A DNA stretch of 64,000 nucleotides from Eukaryota sp. TZLM1-RC (GCA_040285825.1 JAUPSS010000010.1:434001-498000), one strand, 5' to 3'; counted from the stretch's first letter, positions 3,001 through 55,894 are shown. Numbers and translations are program-made. Notes: a model not told the origin generated them from the letters alone.

Positions 3001-4030
3001 CTGACGGGAAGCACCGTGATCATGAACGCTAGAACTAGCGTGGAAGCTAGGGTCGAGAGGTGTCCGTTCAGTAGAGCTGAATTTGCGTGGAGCCTGAATC
3101 GCCCAATCAAGTCTTCTTTTGAGTTCCCCCATCCGTTGTTCACGGTAATGTTGAAAATCAACTCCAGTTCTAGACTCCTGGGGAGGAGCAGAAGATTGAG
3201 TTGTTGAAGATTCCGTAGCAGGTTCTTCATAATCAACCAGATCTGAGTAGATCTGCTCATATCTCTTCCTTTGTTCTTCAGACAGATATGAAGGAAGATT
3301 TGGGGTGCTATGAGCGGGATCATTAGCATGAGGTGGGGAGACCGTCAGATTGTCAACTCCGCTTACTGTGGTTGAAGTAAGGGGAGATCCTGAAGCTGGA
3401 ACAGCAGGATTTTGACTTACTCTCCTTACAGTTGGAACCGAAGGAAATTTGATGGGAGAATGAACCCTCAGACTCAGGTCTAGGAGATGAAGTTGGGACT
3501 TCAGTGTCCTGTTGATAGGGAGGAGTTTGGACTCCAGATCCTTCTGTGGTATTTTGAGAAGGTTGAACCATCTTTCTTCTTTGAATAGAAGGTGAAGGTG
3601 GAACTTCAGAGCTTCTCTGAGGGAGGGGAGAAGATGGGACTTCTGATACCCTGAGTGAAGAAGAAGAGGGAGGAGCTTCGGAATCCTCAGCATCTTTGTC
3701 GTCATAGGAGACTAACGAAGGGCTTCTTCCTTCCAAAGGAATGGAATCCTTAGGAGGGTTGTCTTCTTCCACAGGAACGGAATCCCGAGGAGGGGAGCTT
3801 CCTTCCATTGGAACGGAATCCTCTGGAAGGGAACTGTCTTCCTTTGGGGTAGAACCCTCAGGGAGAGTGGCTTCAGGAAGCGCGAAAACTTCTACTGAAG
3901 GAGGGGGCATGGGAGCTGGGTCTGTGGTTAGTGGTGAGGAAGAGGGACCAGTCTCTTCCTCGTGGATCCTGCATTGAGCCGTTGACGACCCAATACGTAT
4001 TGATGGTCTAGGATGGTTAGTGTCAGACAT
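58..4030 (-). pseudogene. Frameshifted giant Gag-protease polyprotein of family A
   Basis: Colinear with family A copy 2 (52444-55773). A 4-nt deletion near 2638 relative to copy 2 and other indels split one ORF. Confidence 0.8.
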
Positions 4031-4148
4031 ACAGAGTAAAAGTAATGAGATTTATTACGAAGAGGAATTGTATTCTCTCTTCTTAAACTAATAGGCGGAA
4101 TACTAATAAACTATCTAAATAAACTATAAATACTATTCAAGACTAACA
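4001..4148 (-). repeat. 5' LTR, family A (148 bp)
   Basis: TG...CA termini, three homologous copies in the window, internal AATAAA on minus, and the ORF1 ATG at 4030 inside it. Confidence 0.9.
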
Positions 4149-4749
4149 CTAGAAGAGAACGTTGAAGACCTACGGGAAGAATTCCTCTGGCAAATCGATT
4201 CAGAAAAGCTGTGTCTGGTAACTTCAGTCCGGAAGCCCTACTCTTTACCTGGAGGAAACGTCGCAGGTAACAGGACATACGTTCTCGGACGTCACCAATA
4301 CGGACATCAAGCTTCAGTTCTGACATAGCCAGACTAAAATCTTCGTGCGTGGCGAACGATACGACAGATTGTAGATGTCTAAGAAGAACATCGTCACTGG
4401 AAGAGACGTCGGATTTCTGAAGAGATAGGGACTCTAACAGAAAAGAATCGACCAAGAGCCTTGCTGGAACAAGCTCTTTCTTAGGAGTCACAGAAGAATA
4501 GATCTTCCACTCTTGTAGGAACAGAAGAACATTCTCAACTTTCATAGAAGAAAGAGACGGGAGGTTGACAGATGGAACAGTCATCTGAAACAAGAAGGGC
4601 CAATAATTATTGATGCCGTCAGGCAGATGAACACACGAAGGAGAGAGAAAAATCTGAGTTTATTAATAAAACTGATTCATAAATGAGTATCACGTCATCA
4701 GTCGAAATACAAAGAAACATACTAATTCAATTTGAGTTCAACAACAACA
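4149..4749 (-). mobile_element. Family C LTR element copy 1 (5' LTR 4611-4749 + 5' part of gag), interrupted by the family A insertion at 4148/4149
   Basis: Near-identical to 19934-20534 (MTVPSVNLPSLSSMKVE...). Homology stops at the family A LTR. Confidence 0.9.
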
Positions 4750-8900: not shown

Positions 8901-9278
8901 GAACTCATACTATGAGGAGTGAGGTGTAAAAAACTTAAACTCGTTTGAGAAGGAGTGGAGTGGGTTACACTCGAACTCGCTTCTTCATATGGACTACTCA
9001 TGGCACTCAAAAATATGTAGAGAGGATGGTGAAATAGGCCTCCTTTGAAAGATAAAAGATGTCTTACATACCTCAGACATCTTTTTGCTGTTTATAGTGC
9101 TGTTACTGTTAGCTTTTTGATGTGCCTGTGATGCACAATAATCGTTGTTGCCGTTAGGCATTATGCTAGCTGGGTGTGAGTATGGATTTATGTGTAAGGC
9201 GGGTTAGGATAAAGATAATTTTATTTAATGTTATTCTATATACATACTTAGGTACTCACTGATGAGATATTTACAACA
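5931..9278 (-). mobile_element. Degenerate gypsy-type LTR element, family E (putative 5' LTR 9146-9278, extended gag, knuckle, decayed protease)
   Basis: LTR candidate has TGTTG...CAACA termini and a 3' end (GCCTAACGGCAACA) like family C. Downstream are an S/T/P-rich repeat ORF (8321-9010), gag pieces, a knuckle-like HQKSGHVIAEC near 6470-6500, an RG tract and protease-like VIKGIINTAAVCSVIS at 5931-6188. Only one LTR is seen. Confidence 0.7.
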
Positions 9279-10329: not shown

Positions 10330-13300
10330 AACATTGAGATAAAAACTCTTTTGCAAGTAACTAGCTTACGCAAAAGATTTTGAAACACGGCGGGTACATT
10401 TTTTAAACCAAAGGAGGCTCGGAATTACTACAGCGGTTTTCCGTTAATACTTGGGGTGTAAATTCAATTGCCAAAACGCCTTCGGCAAATCCTAAACAAT
10501 AATATATTCCGCAAATAAAAGAAATTTACATACATCAGTTATGCGGGGCACATCAGCTGGAACAAGTTTGGTTAAATCGTTAATACCTTTGTGTTCAGAA
10601 TAGTTACCAGTAGGTCGAAAGGCTATTTTAGGGACACAAACCAAGTAAATTGGAGAAACGAATGGACCATGGTATGGTACTGCAAATCCATTTCCTGACA
10701 AGGTATCAAATTCTTCTTGAGCGATCTTAAGCTTATCGGGAGGCAGGTAATGGGCTTTCTTAAAGACAATTTTGGTCTCATCAGGGAATTTAAGTCGCAT
10801 GGGCTCATACTTATATCTTTGTGGACCAGCTATTTTGGAGAAAATATGAGGGTACTTAAGTAACAAATTTTCAATAATAATAGTTAGTTCGGTATCGTCA
10901 AGTTGGAAAGCAGTCTTTTCAATATTTAAGAGGGCTTGTAGTAGCTTATTGTTCAGAGATTGGACAAATTCAGGGGCCTTCGGGCTATCAGTCTTTATGA
11001 AAGACAACTTCAGTAGAGGCGGGAAGAAAACAGTCAGGAATAGATTCATGTTTTTGAATCTGAATGCTCTGGTGTGATAAATTGATGAACAGGAGATCTT
11101 CGGTTAACATGCCTAGCCTCTTATGTCCCATCAAATAATAAAGTTGTTTTCACAAAATTAAAGGCAAAGTCTTATATTTACAAAAATAATTTGTGCGGTT
11201 CCATTGAGCATAAAGGCAAATCTACCTTTAGCGACCTTACTTTCAAATTGTTTTCCATCTGCTGAGTTTAAGAGGGTTGTATGGTCGGTAACAGTAAGGT
11301 TTGCTTTCCTTACTAACTTTTTGGATATGCAAAAAACACTTGCACCTGTATCTATCATTCCGTAAAGAACGTTGTTGGACTGAGTAAAAATCTTCAAATG
11401 TAATAAAGTTTTTTCCATGGGCTTATTAAGTTTTTGGTGGGTGAAAAAAAATCTTGGATTTATCAGGGATGACATGACAGGTAGGGGCAGGAGACGTATT
11501 CTTAGTTGCATACAATGTATTCAGTTTCTCTGGTTCTAAACTTTATGTAGATCCATCAGTTTTAGATTCATCCGAAACTACACCAGGTGGTTGTACACAG
11601 CTTGCGCCTACATGAGCCATATCAGAATCGAGGTTGGAACCAATTGTATCCAACAAATAATCATGGGTAGTCCCCCTTTGGGCTTTCCTCTGGTTTGATA
11701 GTTCGGAGTCATCTTCAGCTTCAAAAATTATACTACAAGTTAGATTAAAATACTCACTGTTAGCTTGGCAGGTTCTCACCTTTTCATTTTGCGCAATGGC
11801 TGCCGACAAAGAACACAGGACTACGTTTTCAGCACATGACGCAGAATGCAAAAGTGTAGTCTGTTAAGCTGCAGTGTCAGGGGCAATACACAATACATCA
11901 TGGAAAGAAGGGAAGTCTCGGCCAGGCATCACGGAATTTAATGATTCAAATAGTTCATCGAAATGATTAGCATCAGAGTTCAAATAAGAAAAACGGGGAG
12001 AACTGGGTATGGTGGGATTATTGTCAGAGTGACAGTAGAGAAAAAGGTTATTTTGGAAAAAGGGGTTCAAGGATACAATATTGTTTAAGTCCCCTGGGTC
12101 AGAAAAGCTATAGTGGGTTTATAATTTGGGCACATAAGTCTTTTTTTGCTGATAGTCTTCTTTCAAATCTTCGGTGATTGATTCCACTATAGAATTAATA
12201 GGCTTTTTACTACGGGTATGGTAAGCTCTCGGCAGCGTAGAAATGCGGGGATTCCGCTAAGGACGATGTAAATTATTTTGGCTTCTTTTGCAGCCAGGTA
12301 CAGAACAATCTCCAGCAAAATGTCCAGGATTCTTGCAGTAAAAGCATTTCAGTTCTTGGGAGAGGTTAGATTGAGGAGTACCGGTTCCGGGTTGGGTTGA
12401 TCTAGAGTCAGGTCCACAGGGCTGGTTTGAAGAACCTTGCTTAGGAATTGTTCATAAGTTCTATATGAGTTACTTGGAACATTCTGGGTTTTTGGTTGAG
12501 GTCTATGGCCACGGGCATTCTAAAACCTTTGAGACAATCTGTCTTCAAACAGTTAAGCATTCTTGGAATAAGGTCAGTGGTAATCAGGGAGCAATTTTTT
12601 CAATCGTGTTATTATCTCAAAGATGGAGGTGATTAATCAATCTTCGGCTTGGTCTTGAGCAACTTCCTAAGTGCTTTAGGGCATATTCCATTCAGGAATC
12701 TTTTAGCAAGGGTCTTTCATTCTGGAGGGAATGTATTGTGCGAGCTGCCTTCATGAAGTCTCTGGTATATCTGGCGATAACTTCCTCTGCATCACGACAA
12801 TTTAAAGGCAAGAATAATCGGTTAAATGACTGGTACATTTTGACAGTATCTCCAACACGCGTACAGGACAGCAAGTATTTAAATCTCTTGTTAAGTCTCC
12901 TCAATGAAATCTGGTGGATTACAAGAAATGTATCAAAAACTTCAGGGGCCATGCATTTAGGAAAATAGAGTATCAGCAGGGACTCTAGGTCTTCAAGGTT
13001 TTCAAGACATAACAGGTCAGGTTCCTCTTCATCAAGAACATCAGAGTCATCAGAGTACAGAAGAGGGACTTTATCCTCTGCTTGATTGTTAGGACCTTCT
13101 TCCGCTAATGCTTCTCGCACAATAACTTGAATATTCTCAGGTCTAACTTCACTTTCTCCAGCAAGTTTGGCAGTAGATTTACGGGAACTTATTCTAGAGT
13201 TCTAGAAATTATTCAACTGAGACTCAAATCTGGTTATACACATACGGATTGCTCAACTTATCAACAAAGCGAGCACAGGAGGAACGGTCAGCGCTTCCGA

Positions 13301-13544
13301 AAAATGGGGCAACTCGGCCAGGATTACTGATGGGGACCTCAATAATTACTGTGGGGTTCGCTAGCATCAATAGATCCTTGTATGAACAGAAACTACGAAA
13401 CAGAGCTTTATAACAAGAAACGGGAATAATCAGATAAGAATAATTCTTTGTCAAGATCAACTGGGAATGACGTGATATCACGTAATACTGTAACTAATAA
13501 ACTGAATACTAATAAAATCTATTTTAATTGGCTCTAAGCCTACA
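10330..13544 (-). mobile_element. Degenerate gypsy-type LTR element, family D (putative 5' LTR 13350-13544, gag, protease, RT N-terminal part)
   Basis: Knuckle CFYCKNPGHFAGDC at about 12306-12347, protease MIDTGASVFCIS (11158-11511), RT similar to family B (10492-11049, then DLPKAFWQL). LTR termini TGTAGG...CCCACA. Only one LTR is seen. Confidence 0.75.
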
Positions 13545-14109: not shown

Positions 14110-14745
14110 AATTGATAACTTATCGTTCTTTATTACATGATGCTGTTAGGAACACTGTTTTCAATATGGCACAAACTGCAAGAATATTGTGTATCAAAGA
14201 GCCTCTGCTGAAGGAAACACTTTCTCTAACTATTTTTGGTTCTGATGATAGAGGTGATGTATACTGTGATTGGATTGATAATTCTGAAGCTATTGTTGAC
14301 TTTGTCTCATGTAATGTTGCAAATGACACTTTGGTTCACAAAAGGAAACTTAATCCTGTAAATGCTCTTGAATTTAAAGCAAAAGAAAAACATAGAAAAT
14401 ATGACAAAGATATCGAAGAAGCTAATGCTGGTAGAAATACACAGCTGGTTTTTATTGCTTTCCTATTTTCGATAAACGGAAGATTATCAGTAGAAGCAGA
14501 AACTTTTTTGAATGACTTCCAAAAAATGGTTCAAGAAAAAACAATGAAAAGATTTAATATTTTTTTATAGCGCTTTCAGATTCAATTTGCCATTATTAAT
14601 AGATTACCTCGGTTTTTCAATCGAATAAGAGAAGTTTTAGCTAGACAGCAAGCAGATCAAGATTTTGTGGAGAAAATCTTGGTTCGATGATAGTCGTCCC
14701 ATTAGTTATGAATTAATTTAATCAAGTGTGCATGTTCAATAAATA
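14110..14745 (+). mobile_element. 5'-truncated RLE-type non-LTR retrotransposon
   Basis: LHDAVR, RGDVYC...VDFVS and KAKEKHRKYD restriction-like endonuclease motifs, a premature stop at 14568-14570, and a 3' end at AATAAA. Confidence 0.8.
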
Positions 14746-15647: not shown

Positions 15648-15766
15648 GAGAAGGGTTACAGTCTGGACAATAAGAGTCTCTAAGATGGATAAGTTTGTGG
15701 GGTTTTAATGGTGAAAATATCTAACTGTGTTATAGATTACACTAAGAAACCTGCGATTTTTGAGCG

Positions 15767-15776
15767 ATCACGTGAT
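15767..15776. promoter_or_regulatory. Palindromic E-box-like ATCACGTGAT upstream of PFL (candidate)
   Basis: Perfect palindrome about 60 nt upstream of the PFL ATG in a 187-bp divergent intergenic region. Also present in the duplicate at 30131-30140, which is not independent evidence. Confidence 0.3.
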
Positions 15777-15834
15777 TAGCTCTTTAGAATCGGAAACTTG
15801 CCTTTTTCGGCATAATTTCAACTTCCATTTCTGA

Positions 15835-18075
15835 ATGATTGACGTTGCTGGTTTTATTGCTGAAAACATCAAGCCTTATGATGGTGATGCTTCCTTCTTG
15901 ACAGGTCCCACTGAGAACACCAAGAACCTCATGACCAAGACCTCCGGAGTGCTCAAAGAAGAACTCAAGAAGGGTATTCTCGATCTAGACACTGTTCGTC
16001 CATCTACTATCACCTCTCATGGTGCTGGCTATCTAGACAAGAACAAAGAAACGATCGTTGGTTTCCAGGGTGAAGCTCCTCTCCAAAGAACTATGAAATG
16101 TGCTGGAGGTGTCCGTATCACTGCCACTGCATGGTTTGTACCACAATATCACTCATTTTAGCGAATCCTATGGATATAAAATGGACCCCGAAACCCAGCG
16201 CATCTTCACTGAGTACGCCAAGACTCACAATGATGGTGTCTTTGACATTTACACCTCCGAAATGAGAACTGCTAGAAAGTCTGGTATTATCACTGGTCTC
16301 CCTGATGGATATGGCCGTGGTCGTATCATTGGTGACTATCGCCGACTTGCTCTTTACGGAGCTGACCGACTGATCCAGGAAAAGCAGACCGACAAGGCGA
16401 ACCTCCCCAAAACTATGCTCGAAGACACCATGCGTCTCCATGAAGAAGTGTCTGAACAAATAAAAGCCTTGAAGCAAATCAAGAAGCTGGGAGAAATCTA
16501 TGGCTTTGACTTGTCTCGTCCTGCTGAAAACTCTCAAGAAGCTATCCAATGGACCTATTTCGCTTACCTTGCTGCTATCAAACAACAAGATGGTGCCGCT
16601 ATGAGCTTTGGACGTCCAGATGCTTTCTTTGACATCTACATTGAACGTGATCTCGCTAGTGGTAAATTCACTGAACAACAAATTCAAGAATTCATTGACC
16701 ATTTCGTCATTAAACTTCGTCTTGTCCGTCATTTAAGAACTCCCGAATATAATGACCTCTTTGCCGGTGATCCTACCTGGGTAACCATTGTCTTGGGTGG
16801 CCTCAACGAAAGTGGCCAGCACATGGTTACAAAGACCTCTTATCGAATTCTACAGACACTTTACAATCTCGGACCTGCTCCAGAACCCAACATCACTATC
16901 CTCTGGTCGAAATCCCTACCACAAACCTTTAAAGATTTTTGCTCAACAGTTTCTATCGATACATCTTCAATCCAATATGAAAACGATGATCTTATGAGGC
17001 CTATTTTTGGTTCCGATTACGGTATTGCTTGCTGTGTCTCTGCTATGCGTCTTGTATGTTTTTTTAATATCATTAATCCAAGGGAAAACAAAAACAATTC
17101 TTTGGTGCAAGATGTAATCTTGCCAAATTACTACTCTACTCTCTTAACAATGGCGTTGATGAAGTTTCTCGTCAACCAGTAGGGCCTCAGTTCGGCGGTG
17201 CTGCTGGTGAAGATGCTCTTGAATACAGCGAGGTTTGGGAACGCTTCCTGAAGTACATGGACTGGCTAACTGAACTCTACGTTAATACTATGAATGCCAT
17301 TCATTACTCCCATGATAAGTACTCTTATGAGTCGTCAATGATGGCACTTCATGATACCAATGTGGAACGCCTAATGGCTTTCGGTATCGCTGGTCTTTCT
17401 CATGTTGCTGACTCTCTTTCTGCCATCAAGTATGCCAAGGTTTATCCATTGAGAGACGAAACTGGCTTAATTACTGATTTTAAGATTGAAGGAAGCTTCC
17501 CTTGCTATGGAAATGATGATGATCGTGTTGATTCAATCACTGTTGATCTTTGTCACCAGTTCATTGAAAAGATTCGCAAGAACCCAACTTACCGCAATGC
17601 CACCCATACTCTCTCCATCCTCACCATTACTTCTAATGTGGTGTATGGTCGCAAGACTGGTAACACCCCTGATGGTCGTCGTAAAGGAGAAGCTTTTGCC
17701 CCTGGTGCCAATCCCTCTTCGCAAAAAGATAAATCTGGGGCTATCGCTTCTCTCAACTCTGTGGCCAAGATTCAATATGATGATTGTAGAGATGGTATTT
17801 CCAATACTTTTTCAATTCTACCTTCCGCTCTTGGAAAGTCTGAGTCGGAACAAGTTTCTAATTTGACTGCCATGATTGATGGTTATATTCAATCACATGG
17901 TTTCCATATCAATGTCAATTGTGTTCGGAGAGAAGTTTTGCTTGATGCCATGGATCACCCTGAAAAGTATCCTCAACTCACCATCAGAGTGTCGGGTTAT
18001 GCTGTTAACTTTACTAGGTTGACCAAGGCTCAACAAGGTGAAGTGATCGAAAGGACCTTCCATGGTCAAATGTAA
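15835..18075 (+). CDS. pflB: Pyruvate formate-lyase, 727 aa; join(15835..16133,16162..17053,17083..18075)
   Basis: [17 protein letters not shown], active-site ACCVS and glycyl radical loop [12 protein letters not shown] introns of 28 and 29 nt restore the frame. Confidence 0.95.
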
Positions 18076-18714
18076 ATAGAACTTTTGAAATAAATGTTTT
18101 TGTTTTATTGTAATTCTCATTAATGTTATTATACAAACAGATATGCCAATCATGACAATCAAATCTGGATGTTGCTTCTTCATGATCCATCGTTTTCTAA
18201 ACAGATATACATTCATCAACGTTTATCATATCAAAACTTTGTTTTTACCTACTTGTTTTGAGTCACTTTAAACTGAACATCACCTCCATTGTGTTGGTGT
18301 ATTTTAGAAATGAATACTGTATAATCAACCTGGCATCAATGTTTAATGCAATAGCCTAAAGTATTTGGATATTCAAGCAAATTACCAGATTTTAATTTTG
18401 TGGAGATTGACACATAGAGGTGATGTCATGACTGATTTGCGGAATAGTACAAAATTGTATCTCGGTGATGAACACGATTCATTTTTCATAGCCTTCAAAC
18501 AATGTGATCTATTTAGTTTTAATCTATGTGAGTTAACCTTTATTTGTTTCGCTCATCAACTGGACGGAAAGACTACTCTACTCATGATAAATTAGTGGTT
18601 TTGTGTGCAGTGTATGTCCTATAGACCTTGCAAAAATAGCCTTAGACCATCATAGAATAGCACGGTCACAGTGAACAAAATCAATGTTTCTTGGCTCCGT
18701 CCATAGTGTACAGC

Positions 18715-18838
18715 TGATGCTGTTTGTGTCATGTGAAACAATAAAACGGGATAAAGAATATTTATTTAAATTTCACTGGCCCTTATAAAGGCCATCACTA
18801 GTGAAGTCTATATTAGACTAATTGTCAACAGTACAACA
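18715..18838 (-). repeat. 3' LTR, family B
   Basis: Direct repeat of 26455-26578, TG...CA termini, preceded by the PPT. Confidence 0.95.
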
Positions 18839-21800
18839 CTACCTTTTCCCTCTCTTAGATCTCGTGCGAGAGCTATAAGAACTAACTGCAGGGGAATTAG
18901 TCTTAGATTTAGAATTGGAATTCATTTTCCGTTTCCTGGTAGTGTGAGGACCAAGGGTACGCAAATATGATTGGTATGCCTCAGTGCTTTTGACGTCAGC
19001 AACTGGGAGAGACGATGTCTCGCCGCCATACCAAACTGCGGTGCAATAAGGAATTTTATTATCATTCGAGTCTACAAAATCGAATTGATCTATAATCTTT
19101 ATGATTACAGATTTTTCGATATCACCGGCAGCAATGTTTTTATGCCAATCTATATCTTCTTTAGGGAAGTCAGAGAGGTATAGTTTACAATGATTAATAC
19201 TTGCCGTAGACATCGAACCAGTGACAAAATTCTTGAGTAATAAACTTTTATTGGATTTAACTTCTTCAACGAGAAAAGGGCCAGCGAAGCAACCATGGAG
19301 TTTATCATTAGTCTTTAATCGCAAAACTAAGTCACCTTTATTAAAATGGTTCCTATGTTTGTTAACTTCAAACAGTTGATGAGCTTGCCTGAGCTCTGCC
19401 TCTTCTCTCTTCTTTGAAATCCTTTCAAATTTTGCTTCAAGATCTTTAACAAAGGGAATATTAACATTAGCTGATTTTATTAGTTCAAACATATTACTAG
19501 GATCAGCTCTAGGGCTGTGGTCGCTACCAAACATTAAATTTTAGGGCGAATGACCAGCAATTCTACTAATAGTTGAATTGATTTGAAGTTGTACAATTGG
19601 GATATATTCACTCCAATTGCTATAATCACCAGAGTCCACCAAAATCTTTTTTAGACTTTGTGAAATGTCTCTGTGTCGTCTTTCTACTGAACCATTGCTT
19701 TGTGAAAAGCCAGTTAGTAAACGACTTACTTCAATATTTAATAAATCGCATAACCCTTTTAAGATGGCATTTGCAAATTCAATACCATTGTCACTATGAA
19801 TTAACAGTGGGATACCAAAAATTGATATTACACTTCATAGGAGGTGATTGGTTCCTCCACTGCATTCAATTGCTTTACATTGCAAATGATCGTATACCTA
19901 GTGAACGAATCTACAAAAACTTTCAAATACTTGTGTTGTTGTTGCACTCAAATTGAATTAGTAGGTTTCTTTGTATTTCGACTGATGACGTGATACTCAT
20001 TTATGAATCAGTTTTATTAATAAACAACAGATTTCTCTCTCTCCTTCGTGTGTTCATCTGCCTAACGGCATCAATAATTATTGGCCCTTCTTATTTCAGA
20101 TGACTGTTCCTTCTGTCAACCTCCCGTCTCTTTCTTCCATGAAAGTTGAAAGTGTTCTCTTGTTCCTACAAGAGTGGAAGATCTATTCTTCTGTGACTTC
20201 TAAGAAAGAGCTTGTTCCAGCAAGACTCTTGGTCGATTCTTTTCTGTTAGAGTCCCTATCTCTCCAGAAATCCGACGTCTCTTCCAGTGACGATGTTCTT
20301 CTTAGACATCTTCAATCTGTCGTATCGTTCGCCACGTACGAAGATTTTAGTCTGGCTATGTCAGAACTGAAGCTTGATGTCCGTATTGGTGACGTCCGAG
20401 AACGTATGTCCTGTTACCTGCGACGTTTCCTCCAGGTAAAGAGTAGGGCTTCCGGACTGAAGTTACCAGACACAGCTTTTCTGAATCGATTTGCCAGAGG
20501 AATTCTTCCCGTAGGTCTTCAACGTTCTCTACTAGCGAGAATTCGAGATGATGTATTCCCAGATCTTCACTCTCTTGTCGAAACCACTACTGATGAGCTG
20601 TTGGACTGCTCTAGGGTTGCTTCATGGACTCGTGGTTTCAAAACCTCAGTGAATGATGTGGAACGTACGGCTGGCACTAAAACGAGGTCCTCTTGGCGCT
20701 CTCAGGATTTAAAAAATCAATCGTGATTCAAGTGCCACAAGCCTGGACACATCTCCCGCGATTGTCCATCTAAAATCAAACATGAGGTAAATTATTTGTG
20801 TCACACAAACGATGCACCAAAGAGTTTAACAAACCCCATATCTTCCCTCTATTGAGCCAGTACTGTATTTGTCCTCAGAAAAATGGGAAAAAGTAGTGTT
20901 GTTGTTGCACTCAAATTGAATTAGTAGGTTTCTTTGTATTTCGACTGATGACGTGATACTCATTTATGAATCAGTTTTATTAATAAACAACAGATTTCTC
21001 TCTCTCCTTCGTGTGTTCATCTGCCTAACGGCATCACTTGAATCCATTATCATCTTGTGGTAATGGTCCAATAGTGTCTGCATTTATTCGTGCAAAAGGT
21101 CGATCAGCCCAAAGAGAGCCAGATGATTCAATGACATTTTTAGGCACATGTGCCGTCTTTTGACATGCTGGGCATCTCTTAATATGATTAATCATGTCTT
21201 TGCGCATGTTTGGGCAAAAGTAATCACTATTGAGTAATTTCTTTACGCTAGTCGTCACACTAGGATGGCCAACATTTGCATGTCCATGAATGATAGTTAA
21301 AGTCTGCTTTTTTAAACTATCTGGGATAACAATCTTCCCACGATTGTTGGTATACAATTGAATATCTGAATTATATTTGTAATCTTTATAATCATCAGGG
21401 TTTGAATCAACATCTCTAAGTTGTTCTTGCCTAATCTTTGAGATCCAAGTGTCAAATAATTCAAATTTAGTATCCTCAACTGCTTCTTTTAATGCAGATA
21501 AGCTATTAATCGTGGGTAGCTCAATTGCGGACGGTTGAGTAACATCATCCCTTAACAAATTAACTCTAGTTAATAAATTTAAATAGGGTCATTTCTCTTT
21601 AACTCTGTGAGGTGCGAAGTTTCTCACTTGTTGGACTCGAGGGGTTTTGGGTTTGGTATCAACCAATCTAGACAACATGTCTGCCCAATAATTCTCCTCA
21701 CCTGCAGTGTGAACTACATCAAAATTGAATTCGGACAATATTGGTAGCCACCTCTTTACAATTCTGTTCTTTTCAAAAGCTGACATAAGCTATGCTAAGT

Positions 21801-24800: not shown

Positions 24801-26472
24801 TAGGGGTTGCGTAGGTATAGATGGATTGTCAACAGATGCTTGTGTAGGAGTTACTTCACAAGAAGCTCTCCTAAATGCCAAAAATCCTACAGAGATTGTA
24901 CTATATATATTCATATTCCTCTCTTCTGAAGGCAATGTTTCGCTCAACTTTATAATGAATTTTGTCTTAGGAGGTTCCTCCTGCACCGGTATAGTTTGAG
25001 CTGGTGGCCTTAGATCCACCCAATTTGGTGCATCTTTAGATCCTCTAGTGACTCCTGTTAATTTATGATCATATGGAAGGCAACTGCTCTTTATTAAGAC
25101 ATTTTTAAAAACATTTTGGTTTGGCCAGCTATCAACCCATGCCTTAGGTTTTGCCATCCATGTATTGGGATAAATTAATTTTAACTTGTTAGGGCCAACA
25201 CGTTGCTCTTTCAATTCAATTACCATGGTGCCTAGTTCTCTAACGTAGGATTCTTTGGCATGAAATTGAAGGGTGTCGCCTCGAGATTCATCGAATCTGC
25301 CCCCAAGCATAAGTAAGATGTCCGCAATGGAATCTTTTGGGTGAACGTTCTCCACTAGGAAATGCCTTACGACGCATCTAAGGTTCCTACCCTGTTGATT
25401 ATGAGCATACATTTTAGCTATCCAAAATAACCTGTTGTAAGCTTCTTGATTCCCACTAGAATATATTTTGTGGTCATTAATCGCATCCCTATGCCATTTG
25501 GCAGGCCTGAAAGTAGCAGCTTGATACTTTAAACGAGGAGCGCTAAAATAGCAATTCTCGACTGATTCATCCCACACAAGACTGTCGAATCAGTTAGATC
25601 ATCCAATTTCTTTAAAAGATTAGGACTTTGATCGTAACTTTCGTAGACGAAAACGTCAAGTGTTTTGCCGTGGGCTTCCCCAAAGAGGAAGGGCCAGCGT
25701 TTAGCTAAATAATCGCGTCTGGCCTTCTCACTTTCGGCTGGATCCACGTCTCTTGAAAGACGTTTTGCCTCATCCTCAGCCATTTTTAGTAACTTATCGT
25801 CACTCCAATCCATTACATCCTCGGGGGGATTGGCGATGAGGTCCAATAGGAAATCCCTAATTACTGCCTCAACTGCCATTGCTAGTTTTCCTCGGTAAAG
25901 ACCTTGAGAAGTCTTTTCCGCAGAAGAAAAACCTGTAGTTGGATTAGAAGGGTTGGGTGTATGAGGAAGTTCATCATCACTTTCGTCCCCTCTTCTGCTG
26001 TTGTCCAAATTATGTGTTTCTTTGGAATCACTTTGGGGTACCTCACTTGAGATGGTGTCAGAAGGGGTGAGGAGGGAGTTTTGTGTGAAGAACCAGTCGT
26101 GGACTGTTGCTCGTCTTCACCTCCTTCACCTTCTGTACAAACGTTAGAATTGTTAGTGATTGCTAACGCTTTGTATTTCCGTTGCTCGCTTGGAGTATGA
26201 AAACTCTTCCTACAAGGAAGGAGCTCCGAGAAGTTGACCGTATAAGTGTACAGTTCTGTAACATCATCAACGAGGTTACCACTCTCCTTATTGAGGAGGT
26301 AACTTCCTTTCTGAAAGGCAAGGCTCTTCACAGCGGGAAGTTCACTCTCCTGAGGAGGATTGCTCTTTTCATCAGAAGAACTCTCCTTGTGAGGAGGATT
26401 ACTCTCCTTAACAGGAGGATTGTTTACACCATGGCCGCTCAAGCCATTAATTAATGATGCTGTTTGTGTCAT
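18839..26472 (-). pseudogene. Family B gag-pol polyprotein, broken by stops, frameshifts and a family C insertion
   Basis: ORF pieces 25882-26481, 25529-26008, 23199-25577 (gag+PR), 22362-23177 (RT), 21589-22035 (RNase H), 21034-21558 (IN zinc-binding region) and 18839-19534 (IN C-terminus). Confidence 0.9.
19934..21036 (+). mobile_element. Family C 1.1-kb gag-only non-autonomous LTR element nested in the family B integrase
   Basis: Identical 140-bp LTRs 19934-20073 and 20897-21036, 4-bp TSD CTTG, PPT AAAATGGGAAAAAGTAG, gag ORF 20100-20726 followed by knuckle (TGA)FKCHKPGHISRDC. Confidence 0.95.
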
Positions 26473-26578
26473 GTCAAACAATAAAACGGGATAAAGAATA
26501 TTTTTTTAAATTTCACTTGCCCTTATAAAGGCCATCACTAGTGAAGTCTATACTAGACTAAATGTCCACAGTACAACA
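26455..26578 (-). repeat. 5' LTR, family B
   Basis: Direct repeat of 18715-18838. Contains the ORF1 ATG at 26472. Confidence 0.95.
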
Positions 26579-26952
26579 CAACATTATAAGCTGTCGTTAA
26601 AAGATTTGATGTAATCAATTGAAGAAATAACTGTCATGTTTCCTTGTGCGACACTTAATCGCAGTTTAAATCTGTGTTAACTGATCTTGTTCATAATGTT
26701 TAGGAATCAATGTTAACTAGAACAACAATTTTTGAACAGTGTTTGATTACAATAGAATAAAGGAACTCAAAACAAGTAGGTACAAACAAAGTTTTGATAT
26801 GAAGAACGTTGCTGAATATAAATCTGTTCAGAAAACCATGGATCATGAAGAAGCAACTTACAGATTTAATTGTCATGATTGGCATATCTGTTTGTATAAT
26901 AACATTAATGAGAATTACAATAAAACAAAAACATTTATTTCAAAAGTTCTAT

Positions 26953-29900: not shown

Positions 29901-30073
29901 GTAGATGGACGAACAGTGTCTAGATCGAGAATACCCTTCTTGAGTTCTTCTTTGAGCACTTCGGAGGTCTTGGCCATGAGGTTCTTGGTGTTCTCAGTGG
30001 GACCTGTCAAGAACGAAGCATCACCATCATAAGGCTTGATGTTTTCAGCAATAAAACCAGCAACGTCAATCAT
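26953..30073 (-). pseudogene. pflB: Second pyruvate formate-lyase copy, disrupted by a non-LTR insertion in exon 2
   Basis: Near-identical inverted copy of 15835-18075 with the same introns (29747-29774, 27946-27974). Carries an 863-bp insertion at 28355-29217 and an L-to-P change (WSKSPP). Confidence 0.9.
28355..29217 (-). mobile_element. 5'-truncated RLE-type (CRE-like) non-LTR retrotransposon with 17-bp TSD
   Basis: TSD TTCTTGAATTTGTTGTT at 28338-28354 and 29218-29234, A-rich tail, uninterrupted ORF with CKC...HLLNC...HDAVRD, RGD...LLDVMSVDP and AENFKFKKY. Confidence 0.92.
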
Positions 30074-30878
30074 TCAGAAATGGAAGTTGAAATTATGCCG
30101 AAAAAGGCAAGTTTCCGTTTTAAAGAGCTAATCACGTGATCGCTCAAAAATCGCACGTTTCTTGCTTCACCCTGCATATTTTCAATAGTGACTATTACCA
30201 ACCTATTGAATTTTGCTGATTACGTGTTCAGTGTCTTTCGTTACACAACGTTTATCAACTGATACATGCTTGATGTCAATCAACGGCTCAAGCAATGTTC
30301 TGGTGGTGGTGGTGTGTTCCACACATTGGAGGTTCAGAATGATGTAGTTTATCTTGCGTATCAAAGTATCAATGTATAGGATGCACTAATCTTCTTTTCT
30401 ATCTTGGTATAATGTTATTTGCGGTAGGTTACAATATTCCGGTTTTGGAATATCTATTTGAGATAGAGCAGAATCTCACAAAATCAGTAATCTTTCAAAG
30501 TAAATAAATTTAAATTAAAAAAAGACAGTAATCGAAACAACTTTACTGTGGCTATATATGTGTATTTGTATCTGTTTTGTACCATAAAATAGTGGAGAAT
30601 GTCCATCTCTCTTTTAAATCAAATATGTAATAAAGATTTAATTAAAGTGAAGTAAATGAACATATTAAAATTGAACAAATTTATTTACATTTAACAACCT
30701 CATTAATGTAAGTCCCTGGGGCAGAAAAGAAGCCCTTCAAACAAGGATAACCTTTTGGAACACTTCTCAATTGGTTATTTTTGTTCACAATGCATTATAT
30801 TATGAAAAAATTTTAACATAAATTAACCACCAATTTAAATTTGTAGAAACCTCCACAATCTCATAATGTATCTCCAAA

Positions 30879-32099: not shown

Positions 32100-32938
32100 C
32101 ATTTATTTAATATATTTAAATTTTCAATGTTTAAATTCAAATATAGTTTAGTCATTACTACTTTAAGTGGGGTTTTGTAGTTTGGAATATGTGCGCTTTT
32201 CAGAACAGTTTTTGGAATTATTATTTTTGTTCATTGTTTTTTAAGTTGGTGCTGTACAAATTAGGTCTTGTTCTGTAAATAATTCTTACTTTAAAATATC
32301 ACAAATGTATTCAAAAAATAAATTAAATCACAAAGCAATGTGTTTATGGTTGTTTTGCGGTTGTTTCTCTTAATTAATCGACTAATGTTGTTACGATGAT
32401 TGGAAATAATGGCTTATTTGGCTAATGAGCATATTGGAAGGACGTTCAAGGAGGCGTTTCGATGCTTGTAAAGAAACATTATTGGAATCTCAGAATCAAT
32501 CAGTTGCAGTTTTCCTTGGACTACCACTTATCCTCATTTGTAACATTAATGATTTCACACACATTAATTCTAGAAAATTTTATCCTGTAACAAATTCTTT
32601 CACCAAAGTAGAAATCATAGACTTTGTGTATCAATTGTTTATCTGTTCCGTCCATTGAACAATTTCCTGCAGTATTTTTGGTAAAGAATTGTTTATGATG
32701 TCAAATGTTTTGATACCATGTTTCAGGAAATAGTGGGTGAAAAATGTACTTTTTGCGATTTTTCAACATAATCCCAAATTTATGCCATCATTCTTAGTGT
32801 ACCTCAAAGGGAAAGGTTATGTAATACAAGTTCTTTATCCAAAAACTAGGTTATGGAAAAACAATAATGGAATTTTTGGGGAAAATGTTTACAACCTGCA
32901 TTGTTTATGACCTTTGTCACCCACTCATTCATTTCGTT

Positions 32939-33009
32939 GCGTTAGTAGTACAGTGGTAGTATGCCTGCCTTCCAAGCAGATGACCCGGGTTCGATTCCCG
33001 GCTGACGCA
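32939..33009 (+). tRNA. tRNA-Gly (TCC)
   Basis: Acceptor GCGTTAG/CTGACGC, anticodon loop CTTCCAA, T-arm CCGGG-TTCGATT-CCCGG, followed by TTTT. Confidence 0.93.
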
Positions 33010-34129
33010 TTTTGTAAATGTTTTCATGATCTTAAAGATGGTATTAGTCGGTTCATTTTCCTTTTATATAACATGGATCTCTCAGTTTTTTTAAATATTA
33101 TATCAAGATAACTCAAGAATGGTTTTTACGAATAATTCAATATGATAAAAATGACACATTATATGGATTTGATCTCTGACTGCATCATGTAAAGTGGAAC
33201 GATAACAAATAAATCTTTTGCATTGAATAAATGTCAAACCAGCTCCACATTTACAAAACAGATCATTGGGCAAATTACAAGGCCACAGATATCAACGCAT
33301 TCTCATGGCAGTGGTCCATTGTCGTCATTTGCAAATAACCCATAATTTTGGAGAATTTGTTTCAGCAAAAATACAGATGAATTTTCCTAAAATTAGAGTA
33401 TTTATTGAATTTGCACACTTAATTAAATTAACTCATAACTCTAATGAATTTTCCTTCAAATCAAATTTGCAAATACATAAATTGCCTACGCAGCCGTGCT
33501 AAGTCAAACAATCAAATGTGTACTTGTTTTTTTGACTTTTGTTATGAAGACACAGAATTTTAACCTAATCGTATAGTTTATTTTTGTTGGAATAAATAAA
33601 AAAGATTTTAAAAAAAATGTGTACTTTCAAATTTTTTCAAAAATGTCGTTGGAGTTTTTTCAAGGAAACAATTCTTTTTGGAATGTCTTGAACACCTATA
33701 GGGAAACATGATTGCCATAATTCAGGAGATAAAGTTCACATTTCTTCTCTTACTTTGTTCTCAGGAATAGACTGTTTGTGGACTCAAGTTTTTTGACACT
33801 AAACCGATAATCAATAGAACTTTGATCAGTGCTTGCATATCAACGAGATGAACAACCATCCCACAAAAAATACGCTGTTATGTTGTGTCACTTGTTTGTT
33901 TTGAAGAAGTCAAAAATAAGATTGTTTACGTCTTAGCTTGGCTATGGACAAAAATTTCGTTTTGCAAACTTCTTGATGAAGTTGTCTTAGTTGGCAAACT
34001 CCCAAAATTTATTGTCTTCTACCCATTGTTCATCAATGGATTACTCCTTTGAGAATGAAGTGCTTCTTTCGGCCTTGTTCGTTAACAAATGATTCAATTC
34101 GTCGTATTGAATCCGTATTTTTAACTGCA

Positions 34130-36631: not shown

Positions 36632-36881
36632 TGAAGAAAGTTGATGTAAAGAAGGGGATTTATGTATGAATACAGATTTTTAAACAATGAAATCTATTGT
36701 AGTAGTTGAAAGAGGGATTTTGGAAAACATCTTTAAACAAAACTGTGTTGACACGTGTAAATGAACAAAAACTAGTTCGGCCGAACGTTCGGAAGGGTTG
36801 CGAACGTTCGGAATTCTAATATTGCAAATGACAGTTTTCAACTGTCATGTGTTTTTTCAAACACACTTCACAGTGACACCA

Positions 36882-37954
36882 ATGGTATTATTACACCTCT
36901 TCTGTCCAAGGCTCCAGACACTGAGGACGGTTTCTGTTGTAGCTTCTATTTTGTGCTTTGTTTTGGTGTTTGTCTTGTTGTATAATGCATCTGAACATGT
37001 TGACAATACTGGGACACCCATACCTAATTTCTTGTACAGTGGAGAACAACATTTCATTCCTGATTCTCCGCCTACACAACGTTCAACTGAATCAACACCA
37101 TACAACAGTCTTCCAGTACATCTGGTTTGTACTAATGACAACTGTTCATTCAATTTCCTTAATTGGATCCAAATACGATCAGTACAATCCTTTATCAATC
37201 ACTCGCAGATTTACCTTCATGTATTTGGAGATCCAATAGAGAACTACTGGTACAAAAAAGTGTCGGATAGCCTCTCTCTTGTTTACCATAACAAAACCTA
37301 CTACGAGAATTTGGTTCCTAACATCAAGGTTACCTCCTTGGCTCACTTGTCTGATTTCATACGAATTTATGTAATGTGTGAGCAAGGTGGTATTTATCTA
37401 GATATGGATGAATTTCCTATAAAACCTTGGAACCCTTTGCTTACTCAATTAGTAGAACCCATTGATGCAATTCTTGCTAGGCATGCAACTGACCATATCC
37501 AAGTCGCAGCTATGATTGCCTATCCAAAGACAAAAATATGGTGTGAAATAATGTGTGAAAACAAGCGATTGTGTACAATAAGTCTTGGACTGGGCATAGT
37601 ACCAGACTGCTTACCCATCTTTACAACCAGAATACCCAATACCAACAGTCTTCGATAGTGCTTGATTATCGTGTTCTATTTCCTATTGGATGGAGCAAAC
37701 AATCCATGGATAACTTGTACAAACTGGCACCCTATAAGAAAATTGATTTCTCAAAAACTCTTGCTCTTCACGCAAATGGTAAGGAAAGATTGAAGAAGAT
37801 CAACATGACTGCATCGAATGTTTTAAAAGAAGATAGACCTTTTTATAATCTTATAAGACCAATTGTTAAAAAAGGATTAGAAGAAGGTGAAATTGGATTA
37901 GATGACTCTTTGAAAAAAAATGATGTAGATGAATTTATGAAAAAAAGGAGATGA
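36882..37954 (+). pseudogene. GT32-like (DXD) type II membrane glycosyltransferase with one frameshift near 37570
   Basis: N-terminal TM segment and AHLSDFIRIYVMCEQGGIYLDMD motif. The frame switches at cga ttgtgtac aat. May be a sequencing error in an intact gene. Confidence 0.7.
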
Positions 37955-39341: not shown

Positions 39342-40101
39342 CTAAGAATTAGCTTCGCTTCCTAATTCTATTACTACGTCTAGGCCTGTTAGAAGGCGTA
39401 GACTCATTGGAGATACCTTGACGTCGACTAGTGGTACGTTTTCCCATTTTCGTGTTATCCTTACTAAATAACTTATAAGCTTTTGAATGTTTAACCGTAT
39501 GGAGAGGCTCTTCTGTTGTCTCACCGCCAAACAATTGAACAGTACAGAAACTACCTGAGTCAGAGCTATATTGTGAGAGGATTTTTCTATAACGTGTTTT
39601 TCAGCATCGCCTGCTGCGACTACTTTGAGGAATTCAATATCCTGTGGATTTTCAGCCTTATAGATTTTACAATCTTTCTTGGCAGCTTTTAATTCTGTGC
39701 CAGTAGTAAGATTCTTTAATAATAAAGTGGATTTGGAAGGAATGTCAATAACTAAGAATGGTTCATTCCAAGATCCATACAGTTTATTAGTTTGCTTGGT
39801 TTTACGTAAGACATAGTCCAATTAGCGCGAATTAGTATTATCTACTGAAGTCGGAGTATTAAATGTTTGGTGACGCTCCGCTTCTTGCCTTTTTTCTTTT
39901 AGACGAGTATTTTTCAATTCAATTTCATTTAATAAAGGCATAATGGTATCTAATTTGGATAAATTCCCTCATATGTTAGGAGGGTCTGTTCTTGCACTAC
40001 TCGAAGAACCGAACATAAGTTCGTAGGCAGTAAAACCTGTTTTTCTGCTTTTAGTAGAATTTAATAATAGTTGGGATATAGGTACATAGGTTGACCAATT
40101 T
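39342..40101 (-). mobile_element. Gypsy integrase C-terminal remnant (GPY/F-like, chromo-like, basic tail)
   Basis: DYVLRKT...KLYGSWNEPFLV...VAAGDAEKHVIEK parallels 18839-19534. Confidence 0.8.
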
Positions 40102-40300
40102 TGATGGTCTTGGCTGGTTAGTGTCGGACATAGCTGTATAAATGTAATGAGATTTATTAAGAAGAGGAATTGTATTCTCTCTCCTTGTACTAATTGGCAA
40201 AAACTAAATAAACTATAATACTAAGCTGTAAATACTATTCAAGACTAACACTGCATTTTCCTCTTTTTCGAGCGACGAGCCCTAGAAGCTCTGGTCAAAC
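40102..40300 (-). mobile_element. Family A 3' LTR (40102-40250) with PPT and short internal remnant
   Basis: Homologous to 4001-4148. Preceded on minus by GAAAAAGAGGAAAATGCAG and a basic-tail frame RASRARRSKKRKMQ. Confidence 0.85.
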
Positions 40301-52130: not shown

Positions 52131-52445
52131 AATACTAAGAAAAAAATTGCAATGTCAATCCAATCAAAAATTGGTCAAGAAAGGACTTGATACTACTGCA
52201 ACTTTTTCGCTTGTGATGATTAATAGTAAGTGTTGGTTAAGTTTGACAATTTTCTGTATCAATCAAAGGCATTGAGGTAATAGTGTTTAAATGGATTAAT
52301 TCACTTACAGCTTTCTGTTGCCGAAAATTCTAAAAATGATAAATATAAAGCAAAGTTGGTTTCCTTGAATGCTGAATCTCACACTCATTATGTCCTTTGT
52401 CCATTTGCAGTTTTCCTTACTTTGTACGCTTGAACCACTTGCTCT

Positions 52446-55400
52446 ATCTAGCTAGAACTATCTGAGCTGGATCCTCAACATTGCCTCTAGTTTCTTTTAG
52501 AACTCGATCCGTACGGCTCCAGAGAATGAATTTGTTGACAAACTTAAGGAGTTTATCAGCATTTCTCAAATCAGCAGCTTCAAGGTATGGGCGTTTGGGA
52601 CGGTTCCCTCGTCTATCGTCTCGGTCTCTTGATCCGATCATAGAAGAAAGGAGAAGGCTACTATCGTAAGTGCCCGAGAATGGTGATTGATGAGAAGAAG
52701 TTGTTGAGACAGAGCCTATCGTAGAAGGAGTAGGTTGTTGAAGAGGGACTCGACTGACAGGGGTGATGGGGGCGGGAACCGCATCAGCTGATGTGGTAGG
52801 AGTAGGTGACTCGCTACTCACAGTGATGACCTAGTCGTCGGCTTGATCCATGGCAGGTTGTTGAGGTATCCATAGGAGGAACTACACCAGTTTCCATAGG
52901 AGGTTGTGTTGATTCCATGGGTTGTCCTGGGGAAGCTGGAACTTCACTTTGATGAGGTTCAGGAGAAGGTTCAGTTTCTTCAATCTGGGCTGGAACCTGA
53001 TGTGAAGAGATCGCTGGTCGAACCAAGCGTGTCTTTTTAATGCGACCTTCTACCATGACTAGGGTTGGGCAAAAGTCAACGTACGAACACTAAACTACAA
53101 AGTACTTCAGTTGCACTAAAACTACATTATACACATCATTTTGGAAAAATGACAAAGTAGTTCTTCTTCTTCTTAATAAATATTCATCTCTTGGAGAAAC
53201 CTGTTCTCAACTCTTGGCTTTTTGATCACAGGTTTGAAAAGTTCTCTTTTAGGGGGCTCATTCTCTGTGGATGAGGTTTTGAGGTGTCTTTCTTGTTTGC
53301 TGGCCAAACTGTCTAGTTTTTCTCTCCATGTAGCAGAGGCATTGCTTTCACCTTCCAATGTATTTTTGACTCTGAGATCCTGTCCAATAATAATAATTTA
53401 TTATTTCTGGTTCCTGTTTCTCTTCTGGCAACTTTTCTGAATCTTTAGTAATTAATTGTTTTGATGTAAGAGTTGTGTATTGGATTGTTCCATTTCTATT
53501 CGTTGTTTAATGAAAAACAAATATTACGTATATCAAAGCAGAACAGGAGTACAGCAAAAAACTAAACACTATTGAGGACCTTAAATAAATAGTTATAATC
53601 ATTTGAAAAACGACCAAAAGCAGTGGAACAATGATGTTGAGGTTTGTTGCATGAACCGGGTTGATAACCACCCCCATGAATACCAGCAAGAGAATTGAAC
53701 ATAGAGCTTGCAGCATTCTGATCATTGATGAAGGCCATCGCTCTCATGAGAACATTATATCTTTGAGGTAAGATGTAATAAGGACCATGTTTGATATAAA
53801 AGTAGGCAAAGGTTTCTTGTTCTGAACTTCTGAGCACTGTCGCTCCTTCACAAAAATAATGCCATCCATTATAATCTCTTAACAGAGCTTGCCAAAAACT
53901 AATATAATCATCACCATAACCAGGTGATAGGACAAGAAAACCACCATTGAGGAAAGTTGCTGGATTACCGCCTGGCACTGCAAGTAATGATTCAGGGGAA
54001 ACAGGAACATCAAAAAGATGGTCCAAAGACTGATAGATAAAATAATCCCAATCCAAGCTGATAAGATGTTGAACAGGTGCTCCAGGAACATACATACCAT
54101 GGTCCATGACCCATTTCAGCATTCTGGATTCTATGCATCCAGGGAACACTGTGACGAGCTGGAGAGCTCTTTGAAGATTACCAGATCTTCTATGGTCAGG
54201 ACCACAATATGACGCTATCTGGTCAGGACGTCTATCATACAAAAAGAGTCTTTCACCATATGTGGTTTCAGTGAACCACCACCCTGTTCTATAATCTCTG
54301 TCGATAAGGATATCGAGAGAGGCATTGTACCCATGGCTGAACCTAGGGTATGGACAAGGGTTATAGACGTTTATGAAGAGGTTGTCTTCATCTTTCAGCG
54401 AAGCGTCTGAATACTCCCTCTCTTGTTGTTCTCCTGAACCTTACTCCGGGTCTGGGGTCGTGAGTAGGTTCGGGGTCAATTATAGAGGTTTCTGGAGTGA
54501 TCCTTTCATCGGCAAGAAATGGACCAATTCTGGGATTAATCCATAATCCTAAGTCGTTCTCGACTCTAGGACCGTAGAAAGGAGGACGTTTGTTGCTCAT
54601 CTCCGTGGGAGGGATGGCTTCTGGGTCCTCTGGAATGACCTGTGGATCCCTATCACGTCCATAAGGATTGTGCTGACGGGAAGCACCGTGATGAACATTA
54701 GAGCTAGCTTGGAAGCTAGATTGGGTGGGAGTGGATTGAGCAGGTGTAGAGGATGTTCCTCTTCTAGCTTGAATCATCATGTCAAGTCTATCTCTGTGTC
54801 TCCAGTTGCGTTCCTGTCTAAGATAACGCTCTAAATATTCTTTAGAGACCTCACCAGTAACTCTGTCAATTTCAGATGGAGGTGCCGTAGGAGGAATTTG
54901 AGGTTGAGGTAGAGGGGAGAATTCCTTGGAAGGTTCCTCGTAATCAACCAAATCTGAAAAGATTTGTTCGTACCTTTTCCTTTGTTCTTCAGAAAGATAC
55001 GGAAGGTTCGAAGTGCTAGGAGTGGAAACTCTAGCCTGGGGAGGGGAAACAGACAGGTGATTAACTCCACTTACTGCTGTTGAAGTGAGAGGAGATCCTG
55101 AAGCTGAAACAACAGGATTTTGACTTGAACTTCTTCCAGGTGGAACTGAAGGAAGTTGGTGAGAGGGTGGAACCTCAGATTCAGAATGAGAAACTGAAGT
55201 TGGGACTTCAGAATCCTTTTGAGAAGAAGGAGGTTGAACTCCAGTCCCTTCTTTAGTAGCAAGGAGAGGTTGAACAGACTCTCTACCTTGGATAGAAGGT
55301 GAAGATGGTACTTCAGAGCTTTTGAGAGGGTGGGGAGAAGGTGGAACTTCAGATTCCCTAAGAGAAGAAGGGGGATGAGCTTCGGACTCCTCAACGTCCT

Positions 55401-55894
55401 CGTCGCCATAGGAGACCAACGAAGGACTTCTTCCTTCCGAAGGAATGGTATCCTTAGAAGGGTTATTTCCTGTCGAAGGAGCAGAATCCTTAGGAGAAAT
55501 GTCTCCTTCCACAGGAACAGTCTCCTGGGGAGGGGAGCCTCCTTCCATAGGAGCGGAATCCTCTGGAAGGGAACTGTCTTCCTTTGGGGTGGAACCCTCA
55601 GGAACAGAGTCTTCAGGAAGCACAGAAGCTTCAACTGAGGGAGGGAGCACGGGAGCTTGGTCTGCGGTTAGTTGAGAAGAAGAGGGACCAGTCTCTTCCT
55701 CAAGAATCCTGTGTTGAGCCACTGGGGACCCAATACGTATTGATGGTCTATGGCTAGGGTTATCGTGTGACATAGCTTGTGTAAATGTAAAGTAATTTAT
55801 TACGAAGAGGAATTGTATTCTCTCGTCTTATACTAAAAGGCGGAATTCTGTATATAACTAAATACTAAGCTATAAATACTATTCAAGACTAACA
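52446..55894 (-). mobile_element. Family A LTR element copy 2 (5' LTR 55741-55894, 3'-truncated), containing a 1.04-kb foreign insertion
   Basis: ORFs 54388-55773, 54110-54400, 52814-53056 and 52444-52821 are colinear with copy 1. Confidence 0.9.
53562..54103 (-). other. Captured GT8 (glycogenin-like) glycosyltransferase domain, in frame with family A ORF1
   Basis: LISLDWDYFIYQSLDHLF...LNGGFLVLSP...EQETF...LPQRYN...IHGGG matches the GT8 motif order (DXD, NxG, DQ-like, LPxxYN, H). Confidence 0.7.

Follow-up and report, generated by a model that had tools for sequence, protein, structure and literature searches.

The long terminal repeat (LTR) retrotransposons in a 64,000-nt stretch of the genome of Eukaryota sp. 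TZLM1-RC (GCA_040285825.1 JAUPSS010000010.1:434001-498000; hereafter the window, meaning this whole stretch) carry a short palindrome in the position of the transfer RNA (tRNA) primer-binding site (PBS). The palindrome has the form CA-N8-TG, in which the opening CA is the terminal CA of the LTR and the next eight nucleotides are counted +1 to +8; outer arms on either side can pair the leader with the U5 end of the LTR across a short bulge. Covariation among 12 such junctions indicates that this putative primer site pairs with itself. The reading favoured here, which we put at a little under an even chance, is that the element RNA pairs in trans within a genome dimer and that the duplex, once nicked, primes reverse transcription, the palindrome thereby replacing the tRNA PBS.

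An earlier note on this DNA had described the structure at seven sites in five families (A to E), and all seven read as it gave them. They are listed here in element sense, U5 arm first, with the LTR ending at CA:

3987..4008, minus strand: family A copy 1 junction, GACC, bulge AT, CA-ATACGTAT-TG, leader arm GGTC
55727..55748, minus strand: family A copy 2 junction, the same 22-nt motif as copy 1
26442..26461, minus strand: family B junction, AGC-AT-CA-TTAATTAA-TG-GCT
4598..4617, minus strand: family C copy 1 junction, GGC-AT-CA-ATAATTAT-TG-GCC
20067..20086, plus strand: family C copy 2 junction, motif as in C copy 1, with the gag ATG 26 nt past the LTR
13336..13357, minus strand: family D junction, CA-GTAATTAT-TG, with one G.U pair
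9133..9151, minus strand: family E junction, GCA-A-CA-ACGATTAT-TG-TGC, imperfect

The boundaries of A, B, and C were fixed by LTR pairs, target-site duplications (TSDs), and polypurine tracts (PPTs) in a self-comparison of the window, and the 12-bp palindrome is perfect at all five 5′ LTR junctions verified in this way (A twice, B, and C twice), as had been claimed for these families. These five are among nine perfect CA-N8-TG 12-mers in the whole window, for which Markov shuffles lead one to expect 1.2 ± 1.1; the others, at 15378, 40756, 45289, and 52782, lack LTR context and were taken as background. At one mismatch the background is ~16 CA-N8-TG sites per window, and D and E are therefore not significant alone. 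The deviation in D is a single G.U pair, in agreement with the note. The G.U pair and one mismatch that it gave for E are both present at the window site, whereas other genomic copies of E from the four DNA contig runs carry T at 9143, so that the G.U pair is lost and only the C/A mismatch is left. The 22-nt motif is identical in the two copies of A, the surrounding LTR and leader being only ~83% identical, and among the variants listed from the DNA contig runs none lies inside the A or C motif, which is weak evidence. The palindrome had been reported missing after three 3′ LTRs, and it is absent after all eight 3′ LTRs that were checked.

The same layout is found in relatives. An exhaustive search with the reverse transcriptase (RT) yielded ~40 close relatives, beyond which identity falls to <30%. 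Four further families with verified LTR pairs and TSDs, labelled F, G, H, and D2, share the layout and come from three Skoliomonas genomes; the strain names TZLM1-RC, TZLM3-RCL, and GEM-RC1 are those of what we take to be isolates of Skoliomonas, an anaerobic protist of the BaSk metamonads. A host gene in the window matches a protein of TZLM1-RC at 100% identity, and its nearest relatives lie in the latter two strains.

L006 (family F), TZLM3-RCL: LTR 104 nt, TSD ATGA, GGC-AT-CA-ATACGTAT-TG-GCC
L007 (family G), TZLM3-RCL: LTR ~110 nt, TSD ATAA, GGT-A-CA-GTAATTAC-TG-ACC
L008 (family H), GEM-RC1: LTR 109 nt, TSD GGGG, GGT-TA-CA-GTAATTAC-TG-ACC
L009 (family D2), TZLM1-RC: LTR 177 nt, TSD GTAG, CC-A-A-CA-GTAATTAC-TG-T-GG

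In addition, an environmental chromovirus contig (L005) has CA-GTAATTAC-TG 55 nt upstream of the polyprotein ATG, and an element of the fornicate Aduncisulcus paluster (L014; ~28% pol identity, 87-nt LTRs 100% identical, TSD TCTTC) has the junction CA-ATTATATAAT-TG, a perfect 14-bp palindrome (CA-N10-TG) with the ATG 13 nt past the LTR. The note had named palindromy in more families as a check on its proposal, and palindromy held in the four verified families, L005, and L014. Its spacing of exactly 8 nt stands for the Skoliomonas elements but gives way to 10 nt in Aduncisulcus. Presence of the layout in several genomes, including that of Aduncisulcus, makes it a feature of a lineage and not of one genome. 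Boundary proof from LTR pairs and TSDs now covers A, B, C, L002 (a third copy of C), L006, L007, L008, L009, and L014.

Other candidates were set aside. Position 7297 of L004 fits the geometry (GCC-C-CA-AAAATTTT-TG-GGC) without an LTR partner; among the environmental loci L012 and L013, the latter has a 14-bp palindrome, ATAGTAATTACTAT, ~100 nt past the LTR start, where the LTR end is unverifiable. No palindrome occurs in the 655 nt upstream in environmental locus L003, a contig that does not reach the LTR. A metagenome scan with the pol alignment returned one 2-kb locus, which was uninformative.

The covariation test, which the note had likewise named as a check, used an ungapped alignment of the 12 junctions and 500 shuffles. 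Paired cells made up 90.7% of the alignment, compared with 73.3 ± 2.7 in the shuffles, and the covariation score was 0.493 compared with 0.167; in neither case did any of the 500 shuffles score as high. Sliding the register by 1–3 columns lowers pairing to 25–45%. The pair +1/+8 occurs as AU, UA, GC, and GU; at the centre, +4/+5 reads CG in families A and F and AT elsewhere. The outer arms occur as GACC/GGTC, AGC/GCT, GGC/GCC, and GGT/ACC, with cognate arms pairing over a mean of 2.6 bp and non-cognate arms over 1.26 bp (permutation p < 5e-5). Core and outer arms thus both covary, as had been proposed. The same core occurs with different arms (A and F) and the same arms with a different core (C and F), which argues for repeated compensatory change. 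Arms that pair across a bulge of 1–2 nt, part of the original description, are usual in Skoliomonas (3–4 bp) but weak or absent in D, L005, and Aduncisulcus.

These pairs may also be drawn within one RNA, as a U5-leader hairpin composed of arm, bulge, 4-bp stem, and tetraloop. Such a hairpin could be a signal for recognition or packaging, or else an epsilon-like site at which RT starts, either de novo or protein-primed, with no second genome acting as primer. It is the predicted minimum-energy fold in A copy 2, G, H, D2, and L004, and the bulge conserved on its U5 side is reminiscent of initiation signals, hepadnaviral epsilon among them; alternative hairpins, in the leader in F and G and in U5 in C, E, and F, suggest a structural switch. 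However, the centre pair is always complementary and has undergone a double substitution from AT to CG, whereas a loop needs no complementarity. The monomer folds are also predicted to be weak (-5 to -12 kcal/mol), the Aduncisulcus element is without arms and retains only the 14-bp palindrome, and a hairpin, once cut, would be unable to prime U5 copying on the same strand. A purely intramolecular role is thus judged unlikely, although its chance is appreciable.

A further alternative places the signal in DNA, where a dimeric protein, be it a transcription factor of the host or the element integrase or Gag, would bind, the primer then being something unrecognised. The cores TAATTA and TACGTA resemble sites of dimeric factors, and the LTR immediately upstream of the motif is very short and bears a promoter. 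Such sites conserve sequence, however, and here symmetric positions change together; moreover, the GC-rich arms covary across a bulge, 3′ LTRs are not followed by the motif, and its position is exactly that at which priming must occur. A protein site is therefore very improbable as the explanation.

A conventional PBS, a stretch complementary to a tRNA that begins with TGG only a few nt from the 5′ LTR, was not found in these elements. TGG stands 8 nt from the LTR in A, B, C, and F, where it consists of TG and the first base of the arm. It is absent at +9 in L007, L008, L009, D, E, and L005, and absent also in L014; its absence in D and E, one of the points that the note had raised against a tRNA 3′-end PBS, thus extends to five further elements. 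The only tRNA gene in the window, tRNA-Gly(TCC) at 32938-33010, has ≤6 nt of complementarity to the leaders, and no tRNA genes occur in any fetched relative locus, so that the host comparison covers tRNA-Gly(TCC) only.

A host tRNA or tRNA fragment might nonetheless prime in one of two ways: its 3′ CCA could pair with the downstream TGG, 8 nt away, the 8 nt then being trimmed by integrase, or an internal tRNA-iMet fragment could be used as in copia and Ty5. The TGG in A, B, C, and F would suit the former, and the likeness of the family C sequence to the copia half-tRNA PBS, reported in the note, the latter. Against both, TGG is wanting in the seven families and loci named above; the +1 to +10 sequences differ between families; and the sequences past TG vary by family and track U5. 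Priming at +9 would further place the 8-mer inside the LTR, yet eight 3′ LTRs end at CA, without the extra 8 nt, and are followed directly by the TSD. On these differences, and with tRNA-Gly(TCC) as the host tRNA compared, a host tRNA is very improbable as the primer. Two other readings of the junction were dropped: a 5′ splice site (CA-GTAAT, with the LTR ending at CA) fits some families only, and a circle junction is contradicted by a leader that, past TG, is unlike the LTR start.

Self-priming in cis of the Tf1/sushi type, by fold-back of the first ~10 nt of the element transcript onto the site, would account for the lack of a tRNA PBS. Tf1/sushi elements are chromoviruses, and relatives with a chromodomain exist; in D2 an 8-nt complement lies at LTR position 42. 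The complement of +1 to +18 inside the LTR body is, however, only 4–5 nt long in seven of eight families, in agreement with the poor fit reported earlier, and the sole complement of the site is the palindrome itself, which overlaps it and cannot fold onto it in cis. We give this explanation a very slight chance.

Priming in trans by the element's own RNA remains the favoured reading, and several considerations lead to it. Since the LTR edge is the start of minus-strand synthesis, the 3′ end of the primer must pair at about +1. This position is A, T, or G according to family and covaries with +8, and hence no single shared host tRNA can be the primer; an element-specific +1 implies a primer supplied by the element itself, from element RNA. 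As the sole complement is the palindrome, which overlaps the site, pairing would be possible only with a second RNA molecule. The complementarity of +4 and +5, adjacent bases that cannot pair in a hairpin, favours an intermolecular duplex for the same reason, and in every family the homodimer duplex is predicted to be ~12 kcal/mol better than two monomers.

The proposed sequence of events is as follows. Two co-packaged genomes would pair through the palindrome. A nuclease would introduce a nick into one strand within this duplex, the most plausible candidate being the element RNase H, as in Tf1. The new 3′ end would then prime copying of the partner's U5-R, after which plus-strand strong-stop DNA would copy the primer and so restore the palindrome every time. 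A role in the second strand transfer, or in setting the position of the cut, is possible for the outer arms. More broadly, the elements may represent a third mode of priming beside tRNA and Tf1-type cis priming, in which genomes paired by a palindrome are nicked one to prime the other, dimerisation and initiation become one event, and the site is rewritten at every cycle; this wider proposal is possible, but on balance doubtful.

Several points weigh against trans-priming. The bulge is conserved, although copying of the primer beyond +10 should erase it, and the model would thus need a short primer or a block. In D, L005, and the Aduncisulcus element the outer arms pair weakly or are missing, and the mismatch in E is retained across copies. 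The families share ancestry, and the shuffle statistics consequently overstate independence. AT-rich palindromes could also be protein-binding DNA sites, and the argument against internal tRNA fragments is drawn only from the differences between families.

In the literature searched, the structure is unreported for gypsy elements or for metamonads, and the Skoliomonas genome papers do not discuss retrotransposons. The closest known case, which the earlier note did not mention, is a 'Conserved Hairpin Site' (CHS) found in the fungal GalEa Copia elements, which lack a PBS and in which the role of the site is unexplained (2017, PMC5445492). [quoted passage not shown] Both systems lack a tRNA PBS and a Tf1-type U5 complement, and in both an AT-rich palindrome overlaps the 5′ LTR end and is conserved across families. 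GalEa, however, belongs to the Copia superfamily and to fungi, and its palindrome includes one LTR base instead of the two seen here. Its hairpin is formed with CHSeq2, 12–41 bp downstream, whereas the partner of the leader arm described here is the U5 end; no consistent CHSeq2-like copy was seen in the leaders inspected, no systematic search having been made.

Tf1/sushi elements have a tRNA-independent PBS that pairs with their own RNA, the first 11 nt of the same transcript being the primer (Levin 1995; Lin and Levin 1997, as relayed in PMC5006619 and PMC6934838). The present system would share the tRNA-independent pairing with own RNA and probably the need for cleavage of an RNA duplex; the Tf1 PBS is non-palindromic and its primer acts in cis, whereas here the LTR holds no complement and priming would be in trans. 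Dimer initiation sites (DISs), namely the HIV-1 DIS, Ty1 PAL, and Ty3 PAL6, are 6-nt palindromes in hairpin loops, apart from the PBS (PMC11381356). They too are short palindromes, lie close to the 5′ end, and are able to link two genomic RNAs, but the palindrome described here is 12–14 bp long, lies at the PBS position, spans the LTR terminus, and is itself the stem. Unconventional priming is also suspected in the dictyostelid Skipper, a chromovirus-type gypsy element without TGG or an LTR complement (PMC5006619). Skipper differs in having a polypyrimidine tract instead of a palindrome.

The start of reverse transcription is a defining trait of retroelement lineages, and to our knowledge LTR elements have only two established solutions to priming, a host tRNA and the Tf1 fold-back. 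If true, trans-priming would be a new mechanism, of which the fungal GalEa CHS would be a convergent or an ancient case, and a possible explanation would be at hand for the unexplained hairpin site of GalEa. Because the elements are compact and the motif is nearly their sole non-coding signal before gag, the mechanism should be directly testable with short synthetic RNAs and the element RT and RNase H. LTR annotation software that insists on a tRNA PBS will overlook these elements in metamonad genomes or judge them wrongly.

The LTRs on which the junctions of the window depend are as follows:

4001..4148, minus strand: family A copy 1 5′ LTR, 148 nt, TGTTAG...ACCATCA, inserted into C copy 1
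55741..55894, minus strand: family A copy 2 5′ LTR, 154 nt
40101..40252, minus strand: A-type LTR, shortened leader CA-AAAT-TGGTC, a degenerate or deleted junction
26455..26578, minus strand: family B 5′ LTR, 124 nt
18715..18838, minus strand: family B 3′ LTR, 124 nt, preceded by a PPT ending in GGGAAAAGGTAG and followed by the flank GCTG, palindrome absent
19934..20073, plus strand: family C copy 2 5′ LTR, 140 nt, 100% identical to its 3′ LTR
20897..21036, plus strand: family C copy 2 3′ LTR, followed by TSD CTTG, palindrome absent
from 4611, minus strand: family C copy 1 LTR, incomplete, truncated by the insertion of A copy 1

The third C copy, on the same contig (L002 2836-3936), has TSD CATT and the same junction. 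Neither D nor E has an LTR partner within the window. The D leader is, however, homologous to L009, in which the LTR pair and TSD GTAG are verified, and the U5 end of E, GCCTAACGGCAACA, matches the verified U5 end of C, GCCTAACGGCATCA, over the last 14 nt; boundaries for both were accepted but, resting on homology, are less certain than those of A to C. Family D has protease and RT on the minus strand, with E nested within it, and C copy 2 is nested in B.

The note had called the families unrelated, which is wrong. Although their LTR bodies do not align, all the LTRs begin with TGTT(G/A), terminate in (C)ATCA or ACA, and contain a TAATAAAC motif; the PPTs resemble one another as well, and the RTs show 40–60% identity. 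Judged by these sequences, the families are related members of one gypsy lineage in metamonads. Paired TG..CA LTRs, TSD, and PPT are all present, as in Ty3/gypsy elements, a purine tract ending in TAG or CAG precedes each 3′ LTR, and the domain order is protease, RT, RNase H, integrase (in the window elements, and by Pfam families in the relatives). An exact-protein look-up of the family A gag open reading frame (ORF) gave no match. Across the lineage, the LTRs are unusually short, at 87–177 nt, and the leaders measure 13–60 nt; leaders as short as 13–26 nt have no room for another PBS, and the palindromic motif is essentially the sole non-coding signal between LTR and gag.

Family C (19934-21036; L002 2836-3936) is non-autonomous, an LTR element of 1.1 kb that encodes gag only, in a 208-aa ORF bearing a zinc knuckle. 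Its identical LTRs point to recent mobility, which presumably relies on the pol of another family. Its leader ends in a polypyrimidine tract and CAG immediately before the gag ATG (20088-20099). The LTRs of the window, of L006–L009, and of L014 contain the TAATAAAC motif or TATAAAC, often together with TGACGT(C/G), which is similar to a cAMP response element (CRE). Directly past the palindrome, the leaders of L006 (6044-6057) and L007 (4589-4602) contain a hairpin, GRCC-CCCAA-GGYC, and this hairpin and U5 compete for one arm; a U5 hairpin, GCC..GGC, is present in C, E, and L006 and, with the leader hairpin, could form a structural switch.

The nest of B and C retrotransposons is bracketed by an inverted duplication (15744-18270 and 26758-30163) of ~2.5 kb, ~99% identical, that carries a pyruvate formate-lyase (PFL) gene with PFL-like and glycine-radical domains. 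An ORF at 36798-37658, probably a host gene, contains a DXD sugar-binding glycosyltransferase region with a weak match to the catalytic glycosyltransferase domain of TcdA/TcdB. Elsewhere on the contig of the window, a gene at L010 13176-15025 has a weak Cas12f1-like TNB domain of the TnpB/Fanzor type. Finally, L008 has an 88-nt repeat (11822-11909 and 14225-14311) with inverted termini, ATATTGG...CAATAT, the two copies lying ~2.4 kb apart, which looks more like a miniature inverted-repeat transposable element (MITE) or terminal inverted repeat (TIR) than an LTR.

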